This document shows positions 26,173 to 62,039 of a stretch of DNA of 64,000 nt, in pieces. The notes under the pieces were generated by a model. That model searched no databases. It had not been told where the DNA came from and worked only from the letters and a program-made list of their open reading frames with translations. The translations under genes were made by a program, and so were the position numbers. Numbering within the stretch: position 1 is the first letter of the stretch; each line of letters begins with the position of its first letter. The stretch covers positions 62,001 to 126,000 of the IMG/VR virus record IMGVR_UViG_3300015261_000001. One strand, 5' to 3'.

Positions 26173-27609
26173 TTAAAAGTGTTCTTTGATGTTGGCCAGG
26201 AAGTTCTTGGCTTCCAGCAGACCGGTTTCAGTCCCGGAGATCGAACTGCTGGTGCGGTTGATGTAGTACGAGGCGTTCACGAAACGCTGGGCGTTCGCTT
26301 GATCGCCGTTGAAGAAGATCGTCACCGAGATCTCACCGAACAAGTGACATTCAACTTCCACCGACATGATGTTGCGCAGGTGAGCGTACGGACCGGAGTA
26401 CTTCGAGAAGAAGTGCTGAGCGAGCAGCTGTTTGAAACCTTCTACTCGGTTCATTACATACAGATCGCCGTCCAGTACAGACATAGCGGGACCTTGCACA
26501 AACGCCACACCGTTGTCACTACCCAGAACGCCCTCGAAGTCGCTTGGGTTGTTGGTCGCCGAGAACGCCAAGCTCATCAGACCGCTTTGCAGCAGCAGGT
26601 GAACAGTGCACATCGCCAGTTCAGTAGCGATGGTTTCGTACAGGTTAGCCGAACCATATTCGTTACTGGTCAGCAGTGCGTTGTCTTCAGCGAACTTGGT
26701 AACGTTCAGCAGGCCGAGGTGCATGACGTCCAGCAGGTTCTCGAACACCGAGTTGATTTCACCGATGCTGAAACCTTGGAACCCTGCCAGTTGGTGGGTG
26801 CCGGTCTGGAACATCATGGTGTGGAAGAACGGGTTTTCAGTTGGCGAAATTTCACCAATGCTTTCGCCGATCAGGCCGTCAGCCAGAGACAGTTCCAAAC
26901 CTTGGCCCATCGCCGTCTGGTTGCCCGCTGTAGTAGCCAGACGAAGCAGTTCACGACTGTGGTGAGTTGGGTTCAGGTTCTGAGTCTTCGATGCCAGTAC
27001 GTTGTTACGCAGGTCGCTACCAGCTGTGCCGCTGTACATGGCGCTGGTGCCATCTTGCTCGGTCACAGCAAAGCCCAATGCTTCGTTACCGATGTCGATC
27101 GGACGAACGGCTTTCAGATCTTTCTGCTGGTTCGGGTCACCCATCAAGAATTGCTGGGAACCGTCGATCACCGTTTTGACCATCGGGAAACCGGAACTGT
27201 CATGGGTGTTGGTGGTCAGGGTAGTCCAGCAACGAACCGGAACGAACAGGGTGTTTTCAGCGATGCCTTCTTCGCTGTAGTCGCCACCCACCAGATAACC
27301 CACAACTGCCAGTTCGGATTGCTGCATGGCGTTACTTTCAACCATGAAGTTCAACAACGCGATACCGCGGCGCAGGTTGAAACCTTCTTCCATCGACACG
27401 TAGCCTTGAGGACGTGCGGTCAGCTGACCTGCCGATTGGGCGATCTCGTTCAGAGTGCTCGGCATGATTCCGCCGGCCATTTGCTCGTAACGGAGTTTGT
27501 CGATTTCCATGGAACCGATGTTCATGGTGTTGTGGCGGTGTACGTGCGCGTGGTTGCGGTTACCGATACCGAAGATAGCTCGGGTAAGGGTAGTAGTCAT
27601 ATTGGACAT
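26173..27609 (-). CDS. picA: Phage-nucleus protein import factor PicA/Imp1 (phiKZ gp69-like)
   Basis: 478 aa, immediately downstream of the gp68-like gene. Assigned by synteny and size. Confidence 0.6.
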   Translation of the reverse strand: MSNMTTTLTRAIFGIGNRNHAHVHRHNTMNIGSMEIDKLRYEQMAGGIMPSTLNEIAQSAGQLTARPQGYVSMEEGFNLRRGIALLNFMVESNAMQQSELAVVGYLVGGDYSEEGIAENTLFVPVRCWTTLTTNTHDSSGFPMVKTVIDGSQQFLMGDPNQQKDLKAVRPIDIGNEALGFAVTEQDGTSAMYSGTAGSDLRNNVLASKTQNLNPTHHSRELLRLATTAGNQTAMGQGLELSLADGLIGESIGEISPTENPFFHTMMFQTGTHQLAGFQGFSIGEINSVFENLLDVMHLGLLNVTKFAEDNALLTSNEYGSANLYETIATELAMCTVHLLLQSGLMSLAFSATNNPSDFEGVLGSDNGVAFVQGPAMSVLDGDLYVMNRVEGFKQLLAQHFFSKYSGPYAHLRNIMSVEVECHLFGEISVTIFFNGDQANAQRFVNASYYINRTSSSISGTETGLLEAKNFLANIKEHF

Positions 27610-29308: not shown

Positions 29309-30022
29309 TTAGAACTCAACGTCGTCGAACGTGTCGTCGAAGCTGCTGTTACCACCACCACCACCGCCATTGCTCTGGCCGCCGTTGTAGTTGTTACCGC
29401 CGCCACCGTTACCTTGACCTTCACGCGGAGGACGAGGTTCCCAGGCTGCGCGTTCCATGTCATTCAGAACGTTCTGGTGGAAGTTGACCCAGGCACGAGC
29501 CGCCCAACGCGACATGGTACCTTTGTCTTCGACTTTCTCGCCAGCTTCGTTCTTCATATACAGCACGGTGTCGTTCGGACCGCGGAACACCAGAGGTGCC
29601 TTGAAGTCGCCCTTGCTGTAAACGAGAGTGATCACGCCGTTCGCATCACGGATGATGGTGAACATGGCTTGAACGATCGGGTGGTCGGAGATCTTGCTCT
29701 GACCGCCGGACTTGATGAACTGCTTCTTCTGGATCACCATTTGCTTGGTGCCGAAGTTTACATCGTTGGTCGCTTGTAGAACGGCTTCGAAAAGAGAGCC
29801 GCGATCAGAGTAACCCAGTTCCACTTCCTTGTGGTTGGTTTTCTGGTCACGGTTGAAAACGCCGTCGTTGATTTTGAAAACAATCGCCCCGTTATTCTTC
29901 TGTTGGAAGACACCTTGCGCGGGGTACTTACCGCCCGACATTGGCTGAAGAGTTGACGGGTGCGGTTGACGCCAGTCGTCCAGCAGAGTCTTTTTACGCT
30001 GGTTGTTGGTGCCTTGATTCAT
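29309..30022 (-). CDS. chmC: ChmC-like (phiKZ gp67 position) nucleic-acid-binding protein
   Basis: 237 aa, beta-rich core, G/N-rich tail ending in SSB-like acidic FDDTFDDVEF. Assigned by synteny. Confidence 0.65.
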   Translation of the reverse strand: MNQGTNNQRKKTLLDDWRQPHPSTLQPMSGGKYPAQGVFQQKNNGAIVFKINDGVFNRDQKTNHKEVELGYSDRGSLFEAVLQATNDVNFGTKQMVIQKKQFIKSGGQSKISDHPIVQAMFTIIRDANGVITLVYSKGDFKAPLVFRGPNDTVLYMKNEAGEKVEDKGTMSRWAARAWVNFHQNVLNDMERAAWEPRPPREGQGNGGGGNNYNGGQSNGGGGGGNSSFDDTFDDVEF

Positions 30023-33335: not shown

Positions 33336-33986
33336 TTAATCTTCAGGCGGTTCTACAACCGGCTCGACATACGACTTCACTCGTTCACCGCGTTCGCTGG
33401 TAAGGTCGAATGTAGTGCTCAGACGATGATGGTCGATTGCTCGCCAAGTCTTCTGAATGTCTACCCGTTCACGGAATGGCAACTTGCCACCCAGTGTGTC
33501 GTTGTACTGCGTGTGGCGAAGCTGCGCTTTCTCTTCTACCACTGTCAGGTTCAGCAAACCGTTCATAGCGCGGCGATAGAACAAGTTGTCCTCGGCGACG
33601 CCTGTACAGAAATGGCTGAACTCGCCACCGTAGCCGCTGATCTCTTCAGCAAGGTAATCTCGCATCAGGTCAGGGTGAGCCATGATGTAATCCCGCATGT
33701 AGCCCTCGGCGCCTTGCAGAGCTTGAATGCTCCCCAAGTAACCAACAGCATAACGCGACACGAACTCACCATCTTCGTTACCCAGGAGACGCTTACTCAT
33801 TTCCCATGCACGTGAGTTGAGGAAGTTGTCAAAGTTCTCCAAGGTCTTTGTAGCTTGCTGACCCAACCAACCACCGGCATTTTGCAGCATAGCGGTTGTG
33901 TTGTTTACGTACTCGGCGTATTTGTTAATTGCCTCATCCGTGAAACTACCTGAGATCGCATAACTGAACGCATTTGCACTGTTCAT
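33336..33986 (-). CDS. Hypothetical protein downstream of nvRNAP beta' N-terminal subunit
   Basis: 216 aa, SD AGGAGG. Confidence 0.75.
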   Translation of the reverse strand: MNSANAFSYAISGSFTDEAINKYAEYVNNTTAMLQNAGGWLGQQATKTLENFDNFLNSRAWEMSKRLLGNEDGEFVSRYAVGYLGSIQALQGAEGYMRDYIMAHPDLMRDYLAEEISGYGGEFSHFCTGVAEDNLFYRRAMNGLLNLTVVEEKAQLRHTQYNDTLGGKLPFRERVDIQKTWRAIDHHRLSTTFDLTSERGERVKSYVEPVVEPPED

Positions 33987-40087: not shown

Positions 40088-42187
40088 TCAATGTTCGTCA
40101 GATACCAAACGAGTCGACTTGGCGTTTAGAATGAAGACGCCCAGCGATTCAAGAATGGCGTAAATGGATTTCAAGTTCTGCGTGATCAGCTGACGAGCAT
40201 CAACAAACGGCAGGAACTCTTTAGGCACACCGCCAATACCTTCCATCATGTCTGTCGGAATGTAGATAGAAGTCAATCCATCTTTATCCTTGAGGAAGCT
40301 CATGGCTGCTGCTTTGAAGTTTTCATCCTCCAACCCATCGTAGAACTTTTGCAGTTTCTTCTTGCCGTTCAGATCAAGGTTGACTTTGTAGGCCTTATAC
40401 GGCAGTGGTGGTGCCTCGCCGTACTTGGTACTCAGTACTTCCTCCCACAGTTTGTGGTAGAAGAAGATTGATGAATCAGGCGTCTTGTAAACCGCCTCAT
40501 CCTTCACACTGTTCTTGGTTAACCAAGCCCAGCCTCCCTTGGTGATGTCTTCGTACAGGGCGCGCTCGATTTCCGCTGCTTCGTGCAGGATCTGTGGCGC
40601 GTCCAGTTTACCCCGGTTGTACAAGGTATCCAACACCTTCCGCATCAGCTTACCGGTAAAGTCTCGTACCAGTTGAGCAATCTTCACACCCCGCAAGTGA
40701 ACCCCTTTCAACTCAAGCTCAGGCTTCTTGTTCAGAATACCTTCGACCATCAGTTGCAGCGCGTAGTAGTGTTTCGACATCGAAGTCGTTACGTACGAAC
40801 CGAACAGATACTCGTTCTTCATGTTGAGGCGGAACAGATACTTGTCAGCCACGTTCATGTTGCGGCTGAGCTTGGCGTGCTGGTCAACCGCAATCGACCG
40901 AATGAAGTACGTCAACACGCCGTTGAAACGCAGTGCCGTTTGTGGGTCAGCCGCGTAATCCGCAATCACAGTGTCAACGCTGTAGATCACGGAGTCAGTG
41001 TCGGAGGTCATTACGCTTTCACGCACGATCTCTTTAACGTTGAAGATACCGGTTGGTGGAATCTTCGACTTGAAGAACACCTTGAGGAACTTCTCCCACT
41101 TCTGCTCAACCGTGATGTGGTAAGCGTTGAGGTAGTTGATAGCCGTCTTGGTTGCGCCTTCACCCAGCTTGGTAATACACAGGATCTTGTAGTCGCTGTT
41201 GGCTGGTTTGTCGTAATCGTCTTCCTTGGCGTTAGCTGGCAACGCTGGAATGTCACACCAATCGTTAAAGAACTTACGCATCAGTTCCGGGTTGGTAACA
41301 TACAACCCACGCAAGTCCAAGGTGCACAACAGAACGGTCAACTCAAGACCGGTCAAGCCCGACAAGAACAACCGGATCGCGCCAAGTTTGGTCGGGTTGT
41401 TGAAGTAGTAGTGCGCGCAGTGGGTGACCATTTCCATCACTTGGTCAACCGTTGCGTAGTTCATACCGTATTCGGTAATCACTTCTTGCATCAACGCCTG
41501 ATCGGTGTACTGTAGCTGCGCAATAAAACCTTCGATGGCCTTGTTGTACGACAGCAGCAAACGGTTACCGGTAATCAGTCGTTCGTTAATCAGGTTAGCG
41601 GTAGAGGTCAATGCACGGCAGGTACTGGTCAAGCTGGTATGCCCAGACTTGTTAAACAGCGGAGTACCCGAAGACGACATACCACCAGACTGGGCGTTGT
41701 TGAAGATCTTCAACGCGTTCTGGATTTCGTGAAACGCTACTTTGGCTTCATGGTCACCGGCGTCATGTGCCTGTGCCTTCTTGCCTTTATACAAGCGACG
41801 GAACTCAATGAACGCCTCAGTACCAGCTGCGTTTACTGATTGTTCTTCATCGGTATGGGTATAACCGACCAACGAAGGTGAAAGGTGCCAATTGTTCTGT
41901 ACTACCGTGTTGAAGAACTCACGGGTAGCCATGACCATCGGAACGCGGTCACCATGCTTGTCTTTCTTGAAAACACGGAACTTCGCTTCCTTGAATCCGT
42001 TCTCGTTTGGAACAAACACCTGAGCCATCAAATCCAGCAGGTGTTCATAGTCGTAGTTGTAAACCACCGAGAGCATGTAAGCCGCTTGGTAGTGGTACGC
42101 TTTCAAGAAGTTACGGTTAGTTTTGTAGACCGGCTCTTGAAAAGGAGACTGGTGATCAGCGGGGTCTATCTTGGCTGGAACGCCCAT
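40088..42187 (-). CDS. Split family-B DNA polymerase, C-terminal catalytic part (phiKZ gp50-like)
   Basis: Motif B QNALKIFNNAQSG, motif C SDTDSV, KHYY, LKGV. No Exo motifs or motif A. Confidence 0.9.
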   Translation of the reverse strand: MGVPAKIDPADHQSPFQEPVYKTNRNFLKAYHYQAAYMLSVVYNYDYEHLLDLMAQVFVPNENGFKEAKFRVFKKDKHGDRVPMVMATREFFNTVVQNNWHLSPSLVGYTHTDEEQSVNAAGTEAFIEFRRLYKGKKAQAHDAGDHEAKVAFHEIQNALKIFNNAQSGGMSSSGTPLFNKSGHTSLTSTCRALTSTANLINERLITGNRLLLSYNKAIEGFIAQLQYTDQALMQEVITEYGMNYATVDQVMEMVTHCAHYYFNNPTKLGAIRLFLSGLTGLELTVLLCTLDLRGLYVTNPELMRKFFNDWCDIPALPANAKEDDYDKPANSDYKILCITKLGEGATKTAINYLNAYHITVEQKWEKFLKVFFKSKIPPTGIFNVKEIVRESVMTSDTDSVIYSVDTVIADYAADPQTALRFNGVLTYFIRSIAVDQHAKLSRNMNVADKYLFRLNMKNEYLFGSYVTTSMSKHYYALQLMVEGILNKKPELELKGVHLRGVKIAQLVRDFTGKLMRKVLDTLYNRGKLDAPQILHEAAEIERALYEDITKGGWAWLTKNSVKDEAVYKTPDSSIFFYHKLWEEVLSTKYGEAPPLPYKAYKVNLDLNGKKKLQKFYDGLEDENFKAAAMSFLKDKDGLTSIYIPTDMMEGIGGVPKEFLPFVDARQLITQNLKSIYAILESLGVFILNAKSTRLVSDEH

Positions 42188-42302: not shown

Positions 42303-42716
42303 TTAGCGGGTGGTCTCGTGGGAGGTGTAACTGGCTCCCAGGTCGCGCAACGCTTTTGCGAGTGGGCCGTTCATCTTTTCCTGGTAGTTCGTGATGATGA
42401 ACGTTTTGGTACGACCCTCGATTACCTTGAAGGTCGCATCGTTCACCCACGGAATACCGATCACTTCCATCGTGTCGTTCGGACGCTGGATCGCGAAGTA
42501 TTTGTAAGCCGCCGGGTTATTGACGTTGCCTACCTTGTCCTTGAAATAATCGTACAAGTTGGCGTGCTTAACAGCAATTTCAGGATCCATCAAGCGAGCG
42601 GCTTGATAGGTCATATCTGGGACAATGACCACACAGTCAGTGCGTTCATCGCCGTTGATACCGTTGACCACCAGTTGGAAGTCAACGATGTCATTTGTCA
42701 TCGGAGTGATGGCCAT
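42303..42716 (-). CDS. Conserved small beta-rich protein (phiKZ gp49 position)
   Basis: 137 aa, SD GAGG. Confidence 0.7.
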   Translation of the reverse strand: MAITPMTNDIVDFQLVVNGINGDERTDCVVIVPDMTYQAARLMDPEIAVKHANLYDYFKDKVGNVNNPAAYKYFAIQRPNDTMEVIGIPWVNDATFKVIEGRTKTFIITNYQEKMNGPLAKALRDLGASYTSHETTR

Positions 42717-42724
42717 GGCAACCT

Positions 42725-43045
42725 CTAAATGAATTTTACTTCAATCTTGACCAGTGGGAGCATGTAGTTACGACCACTAACTCTTACGACAATGCCCGGT
42801 ACATCCGTTACCGAAACAGCATCGATGACTCCCAAATCGTACTGAGCAAACAAGATCTCTGTCAGCACGGTGTCCTCATTAAATGGCTCGCAGGTCATGA
42901 GGTTAGCCACGTGTTCTTTCAAGACGCCGTGGAAATAGCTAAACGCAGATATTTCTTCGGGTTCGTCAGAAGCTTGGGGCAGCTGGGCCTGTAAATGACT
43001 GGCCACAGCCTGATAATCCACGCTGAGTAACCAATTCAGGCTCAT
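42725..43045 (-). CDS. Hypothetical protein (small-protein array 2)
   Basis: SD AGGAG upstream of ATG 43045. Confidence 0.6.
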   Translation of the reverse strand: MSLNWLLSVDYQAVASHLQAQLPQASDEPEEISAFSYFHGVLKEHVANLMTCEPFNEDTVLTEILFAQYDLGVIDAVSVTDVPGIVVRVSGRNYMLPLVKIEVKFI

Positions 43046-43049
43046 CGCA

Positions 43050-43343
43050 TTAAGGCTCCTGGTAGGAGAAGACAAAGGTTGCTACCGCGCTGTTAACCCG
43101 GCAGTCGTCGAGCTTGACGCTAATACGGTCACGCATCAGTTGCTCCACGATAATTTTGGTGTTATAGAAATCCGTCATCAGCTTCTTTTGCTCGTCTTCG
43201 ATCGGATGAGTGAACTGATCAACGTAAGGGAAAGGCATAGCATTGGGTAAACCCAACATGTCGAACAGTGCACGGTAAGCGCCCATCATCTGCTCAACGT
43301 CTGTCATTGGCGGGATGGCGACGCTATGGGTAGTTAGCTTCAT
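43050..43343 (-). CDS. Hypothetical protein (array 2)
   Basis: 97 aa, tightly packed. Confidence 0.6.
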   Translation of the reverse strand: MKLTTHSVAIPPMTDVEQMMGAYRALFDMLGLPNAMPFPYVDQFTHPIEDEQKKLMTDFYNTKIIVEQLMRDRISVKLDDCRVNSAVATFVFSYQEP

Positions 43344-43659
43344 GACTAATTTCCAAAAGGATTGTGTACGGATAAACGACCCAGCGAATCAGTTGCCCCC
43401 TGCCCGCTAAGGTTCGTATGCTGCCAGCAATAGCCAGCATGTCCAAGCTTACCGCATTCCAAAGCATTTGAGCTGACAGTTCATCCAAGTCCAGCTCAGT
43501 AAACACGTACTCTTTGGTGATGTCTTCGTAAAGCTCATTCGCACGCCAGAGCATTACCAGCGTGGTCATCACCGAGGTGATCTCATCGTCAGTAAACCCG
43601 AAGAGTTTGAATTGAGCACGAAGAGTAAGGTAAGGTAGTGTGACAGTTTTGTTCTTCAC
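43324..43659 (-). CDS. Hypothetical protein (array 2)
   Basis: 111 aa, GTGA overlap with the upstream gene. Confidence 0.6.
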   Translation of the reverse strand: MKNKTVTLPYLTLRAQFKLFGFTDDEITSVMTTLVMLWRANELYEDITKEYVFTELDLDELSAQMLWNAVSLDMLAIAGSIRTLAGRGQLIRWVVYPYTILLEISHEANYP

Positions 43660-44072
43660 TCTAAATCCCTCTCGTCGATTCCAATCAACAGATCGCCGTT
43701 CGATAAGACCCGAAACAAAAACGGGTGTTTTAATGAAGTGTTAGGGATAAGCTTAGCCACTTCATTGTTGATCATGCACGCTACATCTTGAGTTAGTTCG
43801 CTCAGATCATCTGGCAAAAGATAGTACCTGGCCAGACGAGTACCAAAAGTTGTATCCCCCAAATCAAAGGCACCGTTACAGGCGGTAAAGTAGTCTAATC
43901 CTGTTTGCACTAGGCTCCAGGTTATTTTGTTGTATCTATCGTTTCCCGAAACGTTCCCAGTCACTAGTCCGCCAACCTGCTTTCGCATCGTCTCGTACAC
44001 AGGTAGCAAGGCGATCTGAAAGAAGCGGTGTTCTCCGGGTGGTCTCGCGAGTATGGAGTTTACTGAGTTCAT
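43656..44072 (-). CDS. Hypothetical protein (array 2)
   Basis: 138 aa. Confidence 0.6.
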   Translation of the reverse strand: MNSVNSILARPPGEHRFFQIALLPVYETMRKQVGGLVTGNVSGNDRYNKITWSLVQTGLDYFTACNGAFDLGDTTFGTRLARYYLLPDDLSELTQDVACMINNEVAKLIPNTSLKHPFLFRVLSNGDLLIGIDERDLE

Positions 44073-44505
44073 TGATTGCGTCCATATCCGGGTGGTCGCT
44101 TACCATGTCTGTAACATGTTCTGGATCCGGCTCGATGGTGTTCTGTGCCAAAATTCGCGCAATCGTCTCATCAAGATCCATTTTGATATTGATGTGATGA
44201 AACGCTTTCCCTATTTGTTTGTACTCCAGTTGAGCAATAGTGCGTTTATCCCAACCGGCACCTTTTGCACGCTGACGCATTTCTGCGACCATGTTGAGAA
44301 CCATGTCAGCGGCGCCCATCACTTCATAATCGTTTTCCAGCACTTCTTCCAACTGGACGATTACGTCATTTTCCAGATGTGGGTCGTTAAAGATCTCCAC
44401 TGCCCCACGGATCAATTCGCACACCAAATGCTCCCGAACACTTACCTCCTTCATATTCGGGATCATCAAGTTACGTGCTAGGTCCTTTACATCAAAACTG
44501 ATCAT
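43936..44505 (-). CDS. Hypothetical protein (array 2)
   Basis: 189 aa. Its C-terminal part overlaps the next gene by 137 nt. Confidence 0.6.
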   Translation of the reverse strand: MISFDVKDLARNLMIPNMKEVSVREHLVCELIRGAVEIFNDPHLENDVIVQLEEVLENDYEVMGAADMVLNMVAEMRQRAKGAGWDKRTIAQLEYKQIGKAFHHINIKMDLDETIARILAQNTIEPDPEHVTDMVSDHPDMDAINELSKLHTRETTRRTPLLSDRLATCVRDDAKAGWRTSDWERFGKR

Positions 44506-44519
44506 GTTGGCCTCGGTTA

Positions 44520-44885
44520 TTAAAAGGAAAAGGTGAATAACAAATGGTTGTTATTTCGACCCATGGCTTTGACTTCAACCTGCGCGCTGGTCGGAATACC
44601 AAGTGTTACACCCGTCAGAGTTTCTTCCAAACAAGGAATAACTCCAAAGCGTGTTCTCACAATTCCCATCTCAGAAATGTTGTTGTAACCCAAGCTGCTC
44701 AAGCACGCAATAACGTCGGAACGATCTACGCGCTGTTTAAGCAACTCTTTCTCCGCACCAATGGCACGGTATAGGGTGTATTGTTTAAGATCGATAGAGA
44801 AGCTCGTCGACACCTTGTAGCTCCTATTTTGCGGTATTGGGTAGACATAAGAATGTAGGACGGGTAAAAATTCAGTGAAAAACAT
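44520..44885 (-). CDS. Hypothetical protein (array 2)
   Basis: 121 aa, start uncertain. Confidence 0.55.
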   Translation of the reverse strand: MFFTEFLPVLHSYVYPIPQNRSYKVSTSFSIDLKQYTLYRAIGAEKELLKQRVDRSDVIACLSSLGYNNISEMGIVRTRFGVIPCLEETLTGVTLGIPTSAQVEVKAMGRNNNHLLFTFSF

Positions 44886-44892
44886 AATAAAC

Positions 44893-44924
44893 CCTAAGGT
44901 AGGAGCGCTAGCTCCTACCTTAGG
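44893..44924 (-). terminator. Hairpin after phuZ
   Basis: CCTAAGGTAGGAGC-GCTA-GCTCCTACCTTAGG, with a T-rich tail on the minus strand. Confidence 0.8.
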
Positions 44925-44943: not shown

Positions 44944-45930
44944 TTACAACACCATGCCCAGGCTGTTCGAGCCAGTGCTGACGTCTTTCTGCTTGGTGTA
45001 GTCGACAGCCACTTTGGACTTGGCTTCATCGACGCCTTCGATTTCTTCTTGCAACGCGGCCAGAGCGTCGCCGTGGTCCAGAACGATGTGCAGCTGGGTC
45101 ATCTCTTTCGGCAGGTTGACATCTTTACCGAACACGCCGGTGGTGCGATACATCGAACCGACGAACATCGGGATGATTTCGTTGCTGGTACGGAACAGGC
45201 TGGCTACTGCGACCGGAGGCTTGCCTTCGAAGTCAGAAGAAGTCTTCTGGTCGAAGAACTGGATACGGCTCAGCGCTGGCGGAACCTTGCCGCGAGCGGA
45301 GTAGTTGAAGATACGCTTGATATCTTCGTAGTCCATTTCGGTGTTGCTGGCGTCGAACAGGATGCTCAGCAGGTTCAGGCCGCCGACGATTTCTTCGTTG
45401 ACTTCGCCGCGGGTTTTGTCGACGGTGTTCTCGTACGGGATGTAGCACATTGGAGCGCCGAGCTGGCTTTCCGCAGTTTGGTTGGCGAACGAGGTCAGGC
45501 CGCCGACGGAGTTTTCTTTCTCGATGACCGAGGTATGATCGGAAACCAAGCACAGTACTGCAACGTGGCCAGCTTGGATCAGCAGACGAGCAACCAGTAC
45601 AGCGAGCATGCTGCCGGTACCGCCAGCGGTGTTCGAGATGATGACGTTGTAGCGACCGGCTTTGTGTTTCTTGATCACGGCTTCAACGAAAGGGATGGCC
45701 TTTTCGAAGTTGACCGATTTGTCCTTACCGCTACCCAGCGCACCTTCGATGCGTTCAACAACGAACTGGTCGGCGCTGCCGTTTTTGTCGCTGGAATCCA
45801 GACCGATGAAGCGGGCGTTTTTGTTGCCCAGGGTTTTGGCGCCTTTCTTCAATTCGAGAGACAGGTTGATCCCGGTACCGCCACAAGCCCAGTAAGTGAT
45901 GTCGGAAAAGTTTTCGGTGGTCTTAGACAT
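44944..45930 (-). CDS. phuZ: PhuZ tubulin
   Basis: ACGGTGIN, LDSS, GSGKD, tubulin signature AGGTGS, T7-loop-like MDYEDI, 328 aa. Confidence 0.95.
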   Translation of the reverse strand: MSKTTENFSDITYWACGGTGINLSLELKKGAKTLGNKNARFIGLDSSDKNGSADQFVVERIEGALGSGKDKSVNFEKAIPFVEAVIKKHKAGRYNVIISNTAGGTGSMLAVLVARLLIQAGHVAVLCLVSDHTSVIEKENSVGGLTSFANQTAESQLGAPMCYIPYENTVDKTRGEVNEEIVGGLNLLSILFDASNTEMDYEDIKRIFNYSARGKVPPALSRIQFFDQKTSSDFEGKPPVAVASLFRTSNEIIPMFVGSMYRTTGVFGKDVNLPKEMTQLHIVLDHGDALAALQEEIEGVDEAKSKVAVDYTKQKDVSTGSNSLGMVL

Positions 45931-46427: not shown

Positions 46428-47090
46428 CTAGAGGAACTCCGCATACTCTTCGTTCTGCAACAACTCACGCAGATCGTTAAGTTGAGTACGGATTTCTTCA
46501 TCGCTGCTAACGGCCGTGTTGAGGATGTCGCGCATGTCGGAGATAAGGTTGGACAAAGTAGCGGTGACAGGTTCGTCCTCGCGCCAATGCACTACCTTAC
46601 CTTTCCATGCCTCCCAGACCTGTACACGACCACCGGTATGCGAGTCGTATTTGATCGCAGCCTTTACCGCATCTTCCGCTGGTTTGCCAATTGACATAAC
46701 AGCGTCGGCCAATACCGCACCGCTACCGATGGCATATGGACCGGTAACAATGAAGATGTTGGTGTTGGTTGCATGCTCACCGCTCTTGTAATCCCAGCAG
46801 AGCACTTCTCCGTTCTTACCGACCGCCAGCAATTGAAAGCTGGCATCGAGGTCATCCATAACCGTATCGACAGTAACACCCTTGGCCAATTCCTGCTTGA
46901 TGCGCTGTGCCAAGAGCGTATCGCCGCACAAACCAAAGGCTGCAATTTCCACGTTGTTGATGTACCACGTTACATCAGGGTGAGCGATAAAGAGTCGTCG
47001 CGATGCTTCTTGGCGACTTTTCTCATCTTCTTCATCCGATGAATGTGAATCACTTGCCAGGTTCTTGCCGTCCCACGCTACAGTTGACAT
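46428..47090 (-). CDS. HslV/proteasome-beta (Ntn-hydrolase)-like protein with non-canonical catalytic residues
   Basis: (M)STVAWDG..LASDS, GLCG, AIGSGA, DSHTGG. Ser at position 1 and Arg at the Lys33-equivalent position. Confidence 0.85.
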   Translation of the reverse strand: MSTVAWDGKNLASDSHSSDEEDEKSRQEASRRLFIAHPDVTWYINNVEIAAFGLCGDTLLAQRIKQELAKGVTVDTVMDDLDASFQLLAVGKNGEVLCWDYKSGEHATNTNIFIVTGPYAIGSGAVLADAVMSIGKPAEDAVKAAIKYDSHTGGRVQVWEAWKGKVVHWREDEPVTATLSNLISDMRDILNTAVSSDEEIRTQLNDLRELLQNEEYAEFL

Positions 47091-47108: not shown

Positions 47109-47792
47109 TTAGTGGGTGAGTTGTGGGGCTTTCTCCGACTCTTCCTCAGCTGGTGGGGAAGGGAGCGGATGCATGTCCCGGGTGATGTCTTTGATCAAGC
47201 TGGTCAATTGCTCGATGGACATATCGCCCACCTTGCTACCAACTTCCTTGATGTTGACTTCTGGAGGCGCTGGGCGGGTGCTCAGCACTTCTGGAATAGG
47301 TGGCAGATTGAAGATCTGCAAATCACCACCACAGCTGATGTCCAGCTTGATGGCAGCCTTAACGCCTGCTTGAGCGCGACCTTTCTTGCCGATCTCCATT
47401 TGGGAGTAAGCATAAGGCGCGCCGCTACCTACAGCCACCGGCGGATCCATTGGGATACACACTACGTCCTGCTTGCCAGTACGAGCAGGGTGACCGCTGA
47501 TGACGTAGCAGGAGCCGTTCTCCAGAACACACAGAGCATCGAAGCTCAGATCGATTTCAGGTTGCAGTACCGAACGGTAGGTAATGCCCTTTTGCAGCAT
47601 CTCCCGAACGTAAGGAATCGCAGTAGCGCCACCAGCAAACCCGTAAGCCAGTACCTTTACCCCGTTGATTTCCCAGTACTCGTCTTCTTTGGGTGTAAAC
47701 AGTTTCTGGCCACCAGCAGGCAACTTCATATCAGCCATGGTCATTTGGCTGTCGGTTACCAATTCTTGGCCATCATAAGCAACTACAGTCAT
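47109..47792 (-). CDS. HslV/proteasome-beta (Ntn-hydrolase)-like protease
   Basis: (M)TVVAYDG..LVTDSQ..QKLF (Thr1, with Asp-Lys spacing of 16 as in HslV), GFAG, AVGSGA, DISCGG. Confidence 0.88.
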   Translation of the reverse strand: MTVVAYDGQELVTDSQMTMADMKLPAGGQKLFTPKEDEYWEINGVKVLAYGFAGGATAIPYVREMLQKGITYRSVLQPEIDLSFDALCVLENGSCYVISGHPARTGKQDVVCIPMDPPVAVGSGAPYAYSQMEIGKKGRAQAGVKAAIKLDISCGGDLQIFNLPPIPEVLSTRPAPPEVNIKEVGSKVGDMSIEQLTSLIKDITRDMHPLPSPPAEEESEKAPQLTH

Positions 47793-59876: not shown

Positions 59877-62039
59877 ATGACGGTTTTTTCTAATATCGTA
59901 CCGGGTGGTGTGGACAACGGCGGCATCGCGGATCGCTCGATCCCGGAGTACACGATCAACGCTCCGTCGGCGCCGCTCCACCTTCCAGTCGTGCATGTCA
60001 TCACCCCAAAAGGTGCACTGGCAAGCCAAAAAGGCACAGTCTGGATCGCACCCTCCAACTTCACCCAAGTGTTCGGCAACATCTTCGATGAGAAGACCCC
60101 GTACTACAACGCGACGGCCGCGCTGATCCAAGCTCTGGCCAAAGGCAACCAGGGTACCATCGGTGTTCGTCGTCTGTCGGTCAACGAAGAAGTTGCCCGC
60201 GTTGCGATGTCGGCTTACGTTCAGAAGAAGGTCCAACAGGACTACGAGCGTGACTCGGCCGGTCGCTGGAAGTACGACGCGGACGGCAACCGCATCGTTA
60301 TCGTCGGCAAGACGTATGAAGGTGTTGAAGTCACCATCAAGCCCGACGACACCGCTGCGACCCTCGCACCAGGTGAGCTTCAGGTACGTACTATCGCTGC
60401 GAGCGGCGAAGTTCCTGAAACTGTGGTCTATCCTTTGTTCGAAGCCCTCGCTGGCGTCGGTGAAGAATACAACCGCAGCGGCCTGAACCTGGGTGTTCGC
60501 AACGAGATCATGAACTGGCGTTCGGTTTCCGAGTTCGTCCGTTCTACCGGTGTGTTCCCGTTCGACCTGCGTCAATTCGTTGACCCACTGAACGGCGAGC
60601 GTGCATACGCCAAAACCACTACTGGTCGCGACTCGGCGAAGTTCACTCTGTTCCCAACGGATCTGAACAACGTCCAGTACAGCCTGAAGTTCGGTTTCGG
60701 TGCTTACACCGGCACCAACGCCAACCGTCCGTCGAACCCGCAACCTGCGCCGTTCAATGACCTGATCACCTACGACGAAAACATCGACGCGCTTTGCCAG
60801 TTGATGTACGTGGTTGAAAAGGACCACAACGAATCGTTGGTGGAAGTCGGCACTGCTGACCAGTTCTACAAGCAGATGAACCCGTTCACCTGCACCAACC
60901 ACAACGGCGCGCCGTACTACGCCATCAGCACCAACGCCACTATCAAGTGGGATCTGTCGGGCGCGGTGAAGGCTGCCGGCGGTGTATCTCCATTCCTGGA
61001 AAAGGATGGCAAGGTACCGGATTACGTGACCACTCCAGACGTACCGGATCCGTTCGGTCTCCTGGCTGGTCTCGTCCGTCCTCTGACTATCCAGCAAGGT
61101 TGGGAAATCAACAACAAGCTGATGGTCACTGACCTGACTCGTTACGTGAACGGCGTTGAGATGAAAGACGTCACCCGTAACCGTCAGTCGCTGTTCTGGG
61201 ACGTTGGCTACACCCAGGAAGTGAAAGACCTGGCGATGCAGATGCTCGGCCGTCGTAAGGACATCATCGTGATGCCTGACGCCACCGTTTGGACTCCAGG
61301 GCGTTCCAACCCTCTGGAAGAAGTCTACTCGCGTGCCGGCATGCTCACTTCGACCCTGCGCATGACGCCTGAGTCGGAGAAGTGGGGCACCCCAGCAGCT
61401 CGCGCGGCAGTCAACCTCATCGAGGTGAAACTGATCGACGAGAAGACTGGCTGGTACTTCTCGGGCAACATCGACTTGGCTTACGCGTTCGCGTTGTTCG
61501 CCGGTCGTAACAACGGCCTGATCTCGACTCCGCTGTCGCCGGACCACGGTGATAACCGTATCCTGCGTCTGGGTCACAGCCCAACTATCGTCTTCGAAGA
61601 AGATGAAGTGGCTGCTGAGAACTTCGCCAACGGCCACATCAGCCTGCGTCCGTACGACTGGAACACTCAGGTCTACCGCGCCGGTCTGCCAACCGTTTAC
61701 ACCAACCCGGACTCGGTTCTGAAGGACCTGATGACTCCGTTCCTGTGCGTGTGCATGGAGAAGATCTCCGCTGACCAGTGGAAGCTGGTGACTGGCGATA
61801 CCACCATCACGCAGGAGAACTACGCTGCGATCATGAAGGACAACATCGAAGCTGAATGCCGTAAGGCTGTAGGCGGGATGGTCAGTCAGATCACTGCGGA
61901 AACCTCCTTCCAGGAAGGTATCCCAGGTTCGCGTGCCAAACTGAGCGTTGCACTCCATGGCTGGTTCAACAAGGCCAAGTACATGATGGAGTTCGACCTC
62001 TTCGTCCATAACCAACAGGATCTGGCTACTGCGGCTTGA
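59877..62039 (+). CDS. Tail sheath protein (phiKZ gp29-like)
   Basis: 720 aa. Contains sheath-like FWDVGY..VK, PESEKWGT and LPTVY..DSVL. High codon bias, SD GAGG. Confidence 0.88.
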   Translation: MTVFSNIVPGGVDNGGIADRSIPEYTINAPSAPLHLPVVHVITPKGALASQKGTVWIAPSNFTQVFGNIFDEKTPYYNATAALIQALAKGNQGTIGVRRLSVNEEVARVAMSAYVQKKVQQDYERDSAGRWKYDADGNRIVIVGKTYEGVEVTIKPDDTAATLAPGELQVRTIAASGEVPETVVYPLFEALAGVGEEYNRSGLNLGVRNEIMNWRSVSEFVRSTGVFPFDLRQFVDPLNGERAYAKTTTGRDSAKFTLFPTDLNNVQYSLKFGFGAYTGTNANRPSNPQPAPFNDLITYDENIDALCQLMYVVEKDHNESLVEVGTADQFYKQMNPFTCTNHNGAPYYAISTNATIKWDLSGAVKAAGGVSPFLEKDGKVPDYVTTPDVPDPFGLLAGLVRPLTIQQGWEINNKLMVTDLTRYVNGVEMKDVTRNRQSLFWDVGYTQEVKDLAMQMLGRRKDIIVMPDATVWTPGRSNPLEEVYSRAGMLTSTLRMTPESEKWGTPAARAAVNLIEVKLIDEKTGWYFSGNIDLAYAFALFAGRNNGLISTPLSPDHGDNRILRLGHSPTIVFEEDEVAAENFANGHISLRPYDWNTQVYRAGLPTVYTNPDSVLKDLMTPFLCVCMEKISADQWKLVTGDTTITQENYAAIMKDNIEAECRKAVGGMVSQITAETSFQEGIPGSRAKLSVALHGWFNKAKYMMEFDLFVHNQQDLATAA

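Follow-up and report, generated by a model that had tools for sequence, protein, structure and literature searches.

Two small proteins of phage phiKZ have been linked to the import of particular cargos into the phage nucleus: imp2 (orf47) is needed for import of Nlp1, and its product is itself imported, while imp4 (orf48) is needed for import of TopA. No disruptive transposon insertions were recovered in either gene, and both proteins have so far been thought confined to close relatives. In the phiKZ genome, they end a run of small genes (gp44, gp44.1, gp45, gp46, gp47 and gp48) that leads into gp49, the SH3DP gene entered as core gene cg1 (phiKZ gp049) in the Prichard core table, and then into gp50 (DNAP-C), one part of a split polymerase. 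Here we compare this interval with six consecutive open reading frames (ORFs) at positions 42725-44885, minus strand, of a 64,000-nucleotide stretch of DNA (hereafter the window; positions 62,001 to 126,000 of IMG/VR virus record IMGVR_UViG_3300015261_000001), where they lie between phuZ on one side and SH3DP and a divergent family-B DNA polymerase subunit (PolB) on the other. We number them O1 to O6 by their position, -1 to -6, from SH3DP.

The six genes are real, represent six separate families and occur in a fixed order. As to their function, we lean, tentatively and by analogy only, towards six small proteins that act singly, either as cargo-specific nuclear-import adaptors or licensing factors, or as imported nuclear accessory proteins. 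We rate an import role most likely because the phiKZ counterparts include cargo-specific import factors.

Six conserved genes upstream of SH3DP

Because a word-based homologue search returned merely 8 relatives for O1 and 4 for O2, we took the family alignments from IMG/VR loci, clustering 1,272 ORFs upstream of SH3DP from 157 such loci. Searching for loci by SH3DP alone had matched only phage EL, and the SH3DP alignment was too diverse to serve as a search query. Each window gene fell into a cluster of its own, at a set position between -1 and -6 relative to SH3DP (O1, 37 members, the family taking in clusters c6, c23 and c50; O2, c2, 61; O3, c8, 35; O4, c7, 37; O5, c1, 63; O6, c3, 41), and same-position relatives of each gene were present in 35-64 loci. 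Exactly six ORFs separate PhuZ from SH3DP in 54 loci, and in the phiKZ-like and RAY-like clades a larger anchor gene is separated from SH3DP by 5-7 ORFs. The succession of PhuZ, small genes, SH3DP and polymerase is kept in 14 named phages (RisingSun, Aphrodite1, Miami, D3, PS1, pEt-SU, FishSpeaker, AH04, OBP, Sureiya, N1M2, RSF1, Proteus phage 10 and phiKZ, the last with an insertion). In several slots, orthologues can be recognised only within a clade, a sign of very fast divergence, and positional orthology across clades was assigned from gene order together with partial profile links. Each family is single-copy in the source genome.

Given these same-position relatives, together with ribosome-binding sites, coupled starts and a confidently modelled fold for O2 (predicted local distance difference test, pLDDT, 92), we conclude that all six genes are real. 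The original prediction, which was made from the sequence of the window, had described six consecutive small genes between phuZ and the polymerase; these we find, all six on the minus strand, and 12 of the 12 peptide strings that it quoted occur in the translations.

Phage EL carries true orthologues of all six in identical order, the O5/O4 overlap described below included. Its annotation covers three of them (gp17, gp18 and gp19), and gp17 is 35% identical to O5 residues 1-150. The orthologues of O2, O4 and O6 are unannotated in the EL RefSeq record (locus L001, 5833-6156, 6463-6921 and 7333-7626, minus strand).

The cassette begins with O6 (44520..44813; 97 aa). Its longest ORF reaches back to ATG 44885, inside the T-tail of the phuZ terminator hairpin. 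Relatives keep the start motif (M/V)S(K/R)SFxIDL, and AGGAG stands 7 nt upstream of GTG 44813; judging from the sequence, the O6 start is GTG 44813 and not ATG 44885. An automatic annotation from ATG 44885 would give O6 24 spurious residues.

O5 (43936..44505; 189 aa) matches phrog_13883 (E 1e-22 over residues 1-147) and has a conserved domain spanning residues 1 to ~150, with invariant residues N40, D86, R88, M109-D110-L111, T114 and P139. Its C-terminal tail is encoded within an overlap with O4, a 137-nt stretch (43936..44072, minus strand) that is read in two frames, as the O5 tail and, in the +1 frame, as the N-terminus of O4. The overlap measures 101-143 nt in 22 EL-like loci, 38 nt in RisingSun (L057) and 29-44 nt in more distant clades. 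Since the third codon positions of O4 vary less within the overlap than outside it (entropy of 1.34 versus 1.69), both frames appear to be under constraint. We set aside the possibility that O5 and O4 are joined by a programmed +1 frameshift, as the conserved O4 ATG and the separate conserved O5 stop fit two overlapping genes.

O4 itself (43656..44072; 138 aa; phrog_30589, E 4e-5) is followed by O3 (43324..43659; 111 aa), whose GTG start overlaps the O4 stop (GTGA), and O3 is in turn overlapped by 20 nt by O2 (43050..43343; 97 aa; phrog_17392, E 4e-14), which is modelled as beta-alpha-alpha-beta-beta. In the public protein collection, O2 is represented only by an 85-aa product from a later ATG; we favour the 97-aa version, because there are relatives 97 aa long and the N-terminal strand (residues 2-9) is predicted confidently (pLDDT ~93). 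After a gap of 4 nt comes O1 (42725..43045; 106 aa), modelled as a beta-alpha3-beta meander, which starts at ATG 43045 downstream of an AGGAG, has a 106-aa product on record and ends 8 nt before SH3DP. Ribosome-binding sites and coupled starts thus run through the cassette and, because the starts overlap or follow within a few nucleotides, the six genes appear to form a single translationally coupled operon together with SH3DP and, probably, with the polymerase.

Pfam has no family for any of the six; the PHROG families matched by O2, O5 and O4 are all three labelled 'unknown function', and O1, O3 and O6 match no PHROG. PDB sequence searches with O3, O4, O5 and O6 gave nothing below E 0.019, and an Atlas look-alike search with O5 gave no usable match. 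An O2 profile found 79 representatives among 1.84 billion proteins, of which 76 are single-domain proteins of 77-128 aa and the remaining 3, long proteins in which short repeated stretches matched, are probably spurious; no fusion of the O2 domain was found among the 79.

The source phage and the flanking genes

The virus record that contains the window is 238,193 bp long, carries terminal repeats and was recovered as DNA only from rhizosphere metagenomes; no RNA runs containing this phage were found. The named phages closest to it belong to Elvirus, Pseudomonas phage EL among them, with DNA identity of 66-70% over no more than one fifth of the region. The source phage is a nucleus-forming chimallivirus, an EL-like jumbo phage; PhuZ, SH3DP, the divergent PolB, a virion protein and a chimallin-sized ORF occur in succession as in EL gp16 and gp20-gp23. 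The neighbourhood of chimallivirus core block 1 is likewise present, with SH3DP (PF20287) adjoining the divergent PolB (PF20286) and the virion protein and the chimallin-sized ORF beyond; the gene order of the block past the cassette is that of EL gp20-gp23.

On the upstream side, phuZ (44944..45930, minus strand) encodes a tubulin-like protein that matches phrog_4733, 'tubulin PhuZ' (E 1.7e-79), and is 49% identical to EL PhuZ. The boundary between phuZ and the cassette is marked by an intrinsic-terminator-like hairpin 3' of phuZ (44893..44924, minus strand; 14-bp stem and T-rich tail), identified by a terminator scan and by its sequence. Two ORFs upstream of phuZ (46428-47090 and 47109-47792, minus strand; 220 and 227 aa) have similar N-termini and form an apparent tandem pair, in the slot occupied in EL by gp15, 'peptidase HslV family'.

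On the downstream side, SH3DP (42303..42716, minus strand; PF20287, E 6.3e-31) is the equivalent of phiKZ gp49 and was matched by a phiKZ gp49 query in phmmer (E 1.6e-6). The PolB gene (40088..42187, minus strand; PF20286, E 2.4e-245) is the equivalent of phiKZ gp50.

Possible roles of the small proteins

The original prediction had stated that the equivalent phiKZ interval contains the accessory nuclear-import genes gp47 and gp48, and this agrees with the published assignment of orf47 as imp2 and orf48 as imp4. We equate the two intervals by position only. Like the cassette, the phiKZ gp44-gp48 block consists of about six small same-strand genes that end directly upstream of SH3DP/cg1 and the polymerase subunit; gp48, like O1, occupies position -1, immediately upstream of SH3DP/cg1; and the proteins of both blocks are small and without Pfam families. 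Unlike in the window, gp40-gp43 intervene between phuZ and the phiKZ block; sequence and profile comparison showed no resemblance of the phiKZ proteins to the six, and the Foldseek lists for O1 and O2 named no phiKZ protein.

We read the interval as a conserved operon of six different, single-copy, chimallivirus-restricted and fast-evolving small proteins; it begins past the phuZ terminator and, with starts that overlap or are coupled, continues into SH3DP/cg1 and the gene of the polymerase subunit. Every gene is the positional orthologue of the same-slot gene in most chimalliviruses, and the products would be small soluble alpha/beta proteins serving nuclear import or themselves imported. In favour of this reading we count, besides the operon structure, the six position-bound clusters, the synteny and the phiKZ slot of imp2 and imp4, that gp48 falls in the position -1 family of the phiKZ-like phages (hhsearch probability of 91.5% to cluster c10), the slot of O1, that the window holds a homologue of Imp3 (phiKZ gp59; 33336-33986, minus strand; E 2e-15), that the purified phiKZ core polymerase works without these small proteins, and that O1 and O2 are modelled as compact alpha/beta domains without a catalytic-family match.

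Several results weigh against it. Of the phage, only DNA from rhizosphere metagenomes is on record. Neither sequence nor profile comparison tied any of the six to phiKZ gp44-gp48, and phmmer found no match. For gp48, phmmer found none among all ORFs of the genome, and hhsearch with c106, which reached c10 at 91.5%, gave the O1 family at <1%. For gp47, phmmer likewise found no match among the genome ORFs, and the best profile chain, from gp47 to the Petsuvirus position -3 family c17 and from there to O3, scored merely 27% (c17 to the Imp2 family c4) and 38% (O3 to c17, 37.6%). Foldseek searches of BFVD with O1 and O2 listed neither gp47 nor gp48 of phiKZ; with the O1 model (pLDDT 74), no phiKZ protein was among the top 50, and it is not established that gp48 is present in BFVD. 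A simple sequence search (phmmer) also found no homologue of Imp1 (phiKZ gp69) in the genome. A 478-aa ORF in the same slot (26173-27609), considered as an Imp1 candidate, has no significant similarity to phiKZ gp69. Separately, an ORF at 29309-30022 (minus strand) is weakly Imp6/ChmC-like (E 0.047).

One alternative, which we consider rather unlikely, is a role in the replisome: co-expressed with SH3DP/cg1 and the polymerase, the six would be accessory or assembly factors such as loaders, a primase partner, or single-strand-binding or chaperone-like subunits, of kinds that seem otherwise to be missing from chimalliviruses. They share an operon with cg1 and the DNAP-C orthologue, a linkage conserved across the family; chimalliviruses are reported to have no identified primase or classical clamp; and the invariant polar residues of O5 suggest a defined site. 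However, purified phiKZ core polymerase is reported to be active as gp82, gp50 and Rhc alone, and a polymerase that is active without the small proteins lowers the likelihood of such a role. Moreover, the core genome defined by PSI-BLAST begins at gp49 and leaves out the small genes, whereas replisome parts are usually better conserved, and no nucleic-acid-binding or enzymatic family was matched.

Ancestry, folds and family-wide meaning

The original prediction had read the six as an ancient paralog array forming a hetero-oligomer or a set of cargo adaptors, that is, as tandem descendants of one beta-alpha(n)-beta-hairpin ancestor. We regard this as unlikely. The absence of obvious sequence identity among the six, which the prediction had itself remarked on, extends to sensitive profile comparison: cross-matches between the six families in hidden Markov model (HMM)-to-sequence searches all had E above 0.01, and hhalign gave a probability of <=4.2% for each of the 15 pairs. 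In an all-against-all hhsearch of 65 family profiles, rerun after merging linked families, every link >80% led to a cluster in an identical or neighbouring array position of another clade, and no link was found among the six window families. O4 (c7) was thus linked to c52 (97.4%) and c44 (97.2%), which hold position -4/-5 in other clades, with c18 reaching it only via c44 (84.5%) and having no direct link to c7; the O1 family was linked to c23 and c50 at >80%; and the link of O6 to c53 fell short of that, at 74.5%. In phages of the OBP, pEt-SU and N1M2 kind (Petsuvirus-like loci L073-L079), the ORF at position -1 is ~204-234 aa long and matches O1 at both ends, with a probability of 95% for the C-terminal and 34% for the N-terminal part, and has ~100 extra residues in the middle. 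Ancient paralogy was therefore not borne out at the level of sequence. Nor was the further suggestion of a relation to another array of the same DNA (array 1), since no extra copies of the six families were found elsewhere in the source genome.

In favour of common descent, arrays in other clades contain adjacent pairs from the same cluster: c24 (25% identity, E 5e-8), c36 (32%, E 1e-25), c108 (27%, E 5e-9) and the Imp4-related c10 (41% over 70 aa, E 4e-13). The two c10 copies occupy positions -1 and -2 in the phiKZ-like loci L102 (4165-5026) and L103, a recent duplication of an import-factor relative. Such tandem pairs indicate that these arrays grow by tandem duplication. The tightly coupled starts of the cassette would also fit a tandem origin, and duplicates of greater age may no longer resemble one another in sequence at all; common ancestry of the six is thus possible but not shown, and sequence comparison lends it no support.

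We then turned to structure, for which AlphaFold2 models were made of O1 (42-row alignment) and O2 (37-row alignment). The O2 model (pLDDT 92.1; predicted template-modelling score, pTM, 0.81) consists of strands (E) and helices (H) in the order E2-9, H16-29, H49-72, E74-83 and E87-95, and the O1 model (pLDDT 73.7, pTM 0.62) of E4-6, H11-21, H30-50, H59-65, E73-89 and E92-104. Both models align nearly full length, and in the same element order, with the fold of ribosomal protein uL22 (beta-alpha3-beta2, two-layer alpha/beta). Their best PDB analogues, although weak, are held in common, namely the uL22 chains 9i05_Ao and 6ywe_O over the same residues (in 9i05_Ao, 134-244 for O2 and 133-242 for O1); mitoribosomal uL22m chains likewise align with both, and a chorismate-enzyme subdomain (8rp1_CCC) is in both match lists. 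Because the same uL22-type chains and the same chorismate-enzyme subdomain recur in both lists, the arrangement that the two models share is a generic, two-layer beta-alpha(n)-beta2 one. Neither model matched a catalytic family.

The strand-helices-hairpin architecture that had been ascribed to all six thus stands for the element order of O1 and O2 as modelled. In a crude propensity test on alignments of 52 array and 25 neighbouring control families, the excess of terminal beta propensity over the controls was not significant (N-terminal p=0.15, C-terminal p=0.42), and the pattern read from the sequence is therefore not demonstrably beyond chance. A Chou-Fasman style guess was too poor to serve as evidence; one helix that is confident in the O2 model was absent from it.

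Even for O1 and O2, which have the same element order and the same weak PDB analogues, the models speak against one family in several respects. O1 has four strands and three helices, whereas O2 has three strands and two helices. Against BFVD, Foldseek recovered the own orthologues of O2 in Joad, Miami, VP4B and LAh10 at template-modelling scores (TM) of 0.82-0.94 and the own orthologue of O1 in phage LAh10 at TM 0.60, but no reciprocal matches between the two families (sought at TM above ~0.5). O2 also had weak BFVD matches among the other small proteins of chimalliviruses (TM 0.39-0.47, root-mean-square deviation 7-12 A), which we rejected as noise rather than taking them for cross-family links; one of them is an Aphrodite1 protein of 135 aa, equal in length to the Aphrodite1 SH3DP orthologue. 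An ESM Atlas fold search with the O2 model reached TM <=0.52 and returned no coherent family.

With regard to a hetero-oligomer, a four-chain complex prediction, in which O2 was the partner scored alongside O1, O3 and residues 1-150 of O5, gave an ipSAE of 0.00 in both runs, which counts neither for nor against binding. Imp2 and Imp4 of phiKZ have different cargos, and an obligate complex is accordingly less likely.

Finally, the six might be rapidly evolving genes for host takeover or anti-defence that merely occupy a permissive intergenic slot. This would suit their very fast divergence, with several slots recognisable only within clades, their narrow family (79 representatives for O2), the small size of the proteins and the lack of a known fold match, but it is quite improbable, given that the number and order of these single-copy genes are strictly conserved across the family, that the gene content of accessory anti-defence loci usually varies, and that imp2 and imp4, their counterparts in phiKZ, behave like essential genes.

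Proteins that act singly in nuclear import thus remain our preferred, tentative reading of the cassette. A bolder reading, which we hold to be doubtful, is that every chimallivirus would carry, upstream of cg1 and the polymerase, one array of 5-7 diversified beta-alpha(n)-beta-hairpin proteins that arose from a single ancestor by tandem duplication and serve as cargo-specific import adaptors, with O1 as the Imp4 orthologue and O3 (or O2) as the Imp2 orthologue, so that Imp2 and Imp4 would be family-wide rather than specific to Pseudomonas phages. If the same-slot runs of EL-like, RisingSun-like, Petsuvirus, Vibrio and Aeromonas chimalliviruses are diverged equivalents, an idea directly testable in EL because EL grows on Pseudomonas aeruginosa, they would constitute a defined, family-wide shortlist of candidate cargo adaptors and would show import specificity diversifying by duplication and rapid divergence beside the replication genes.

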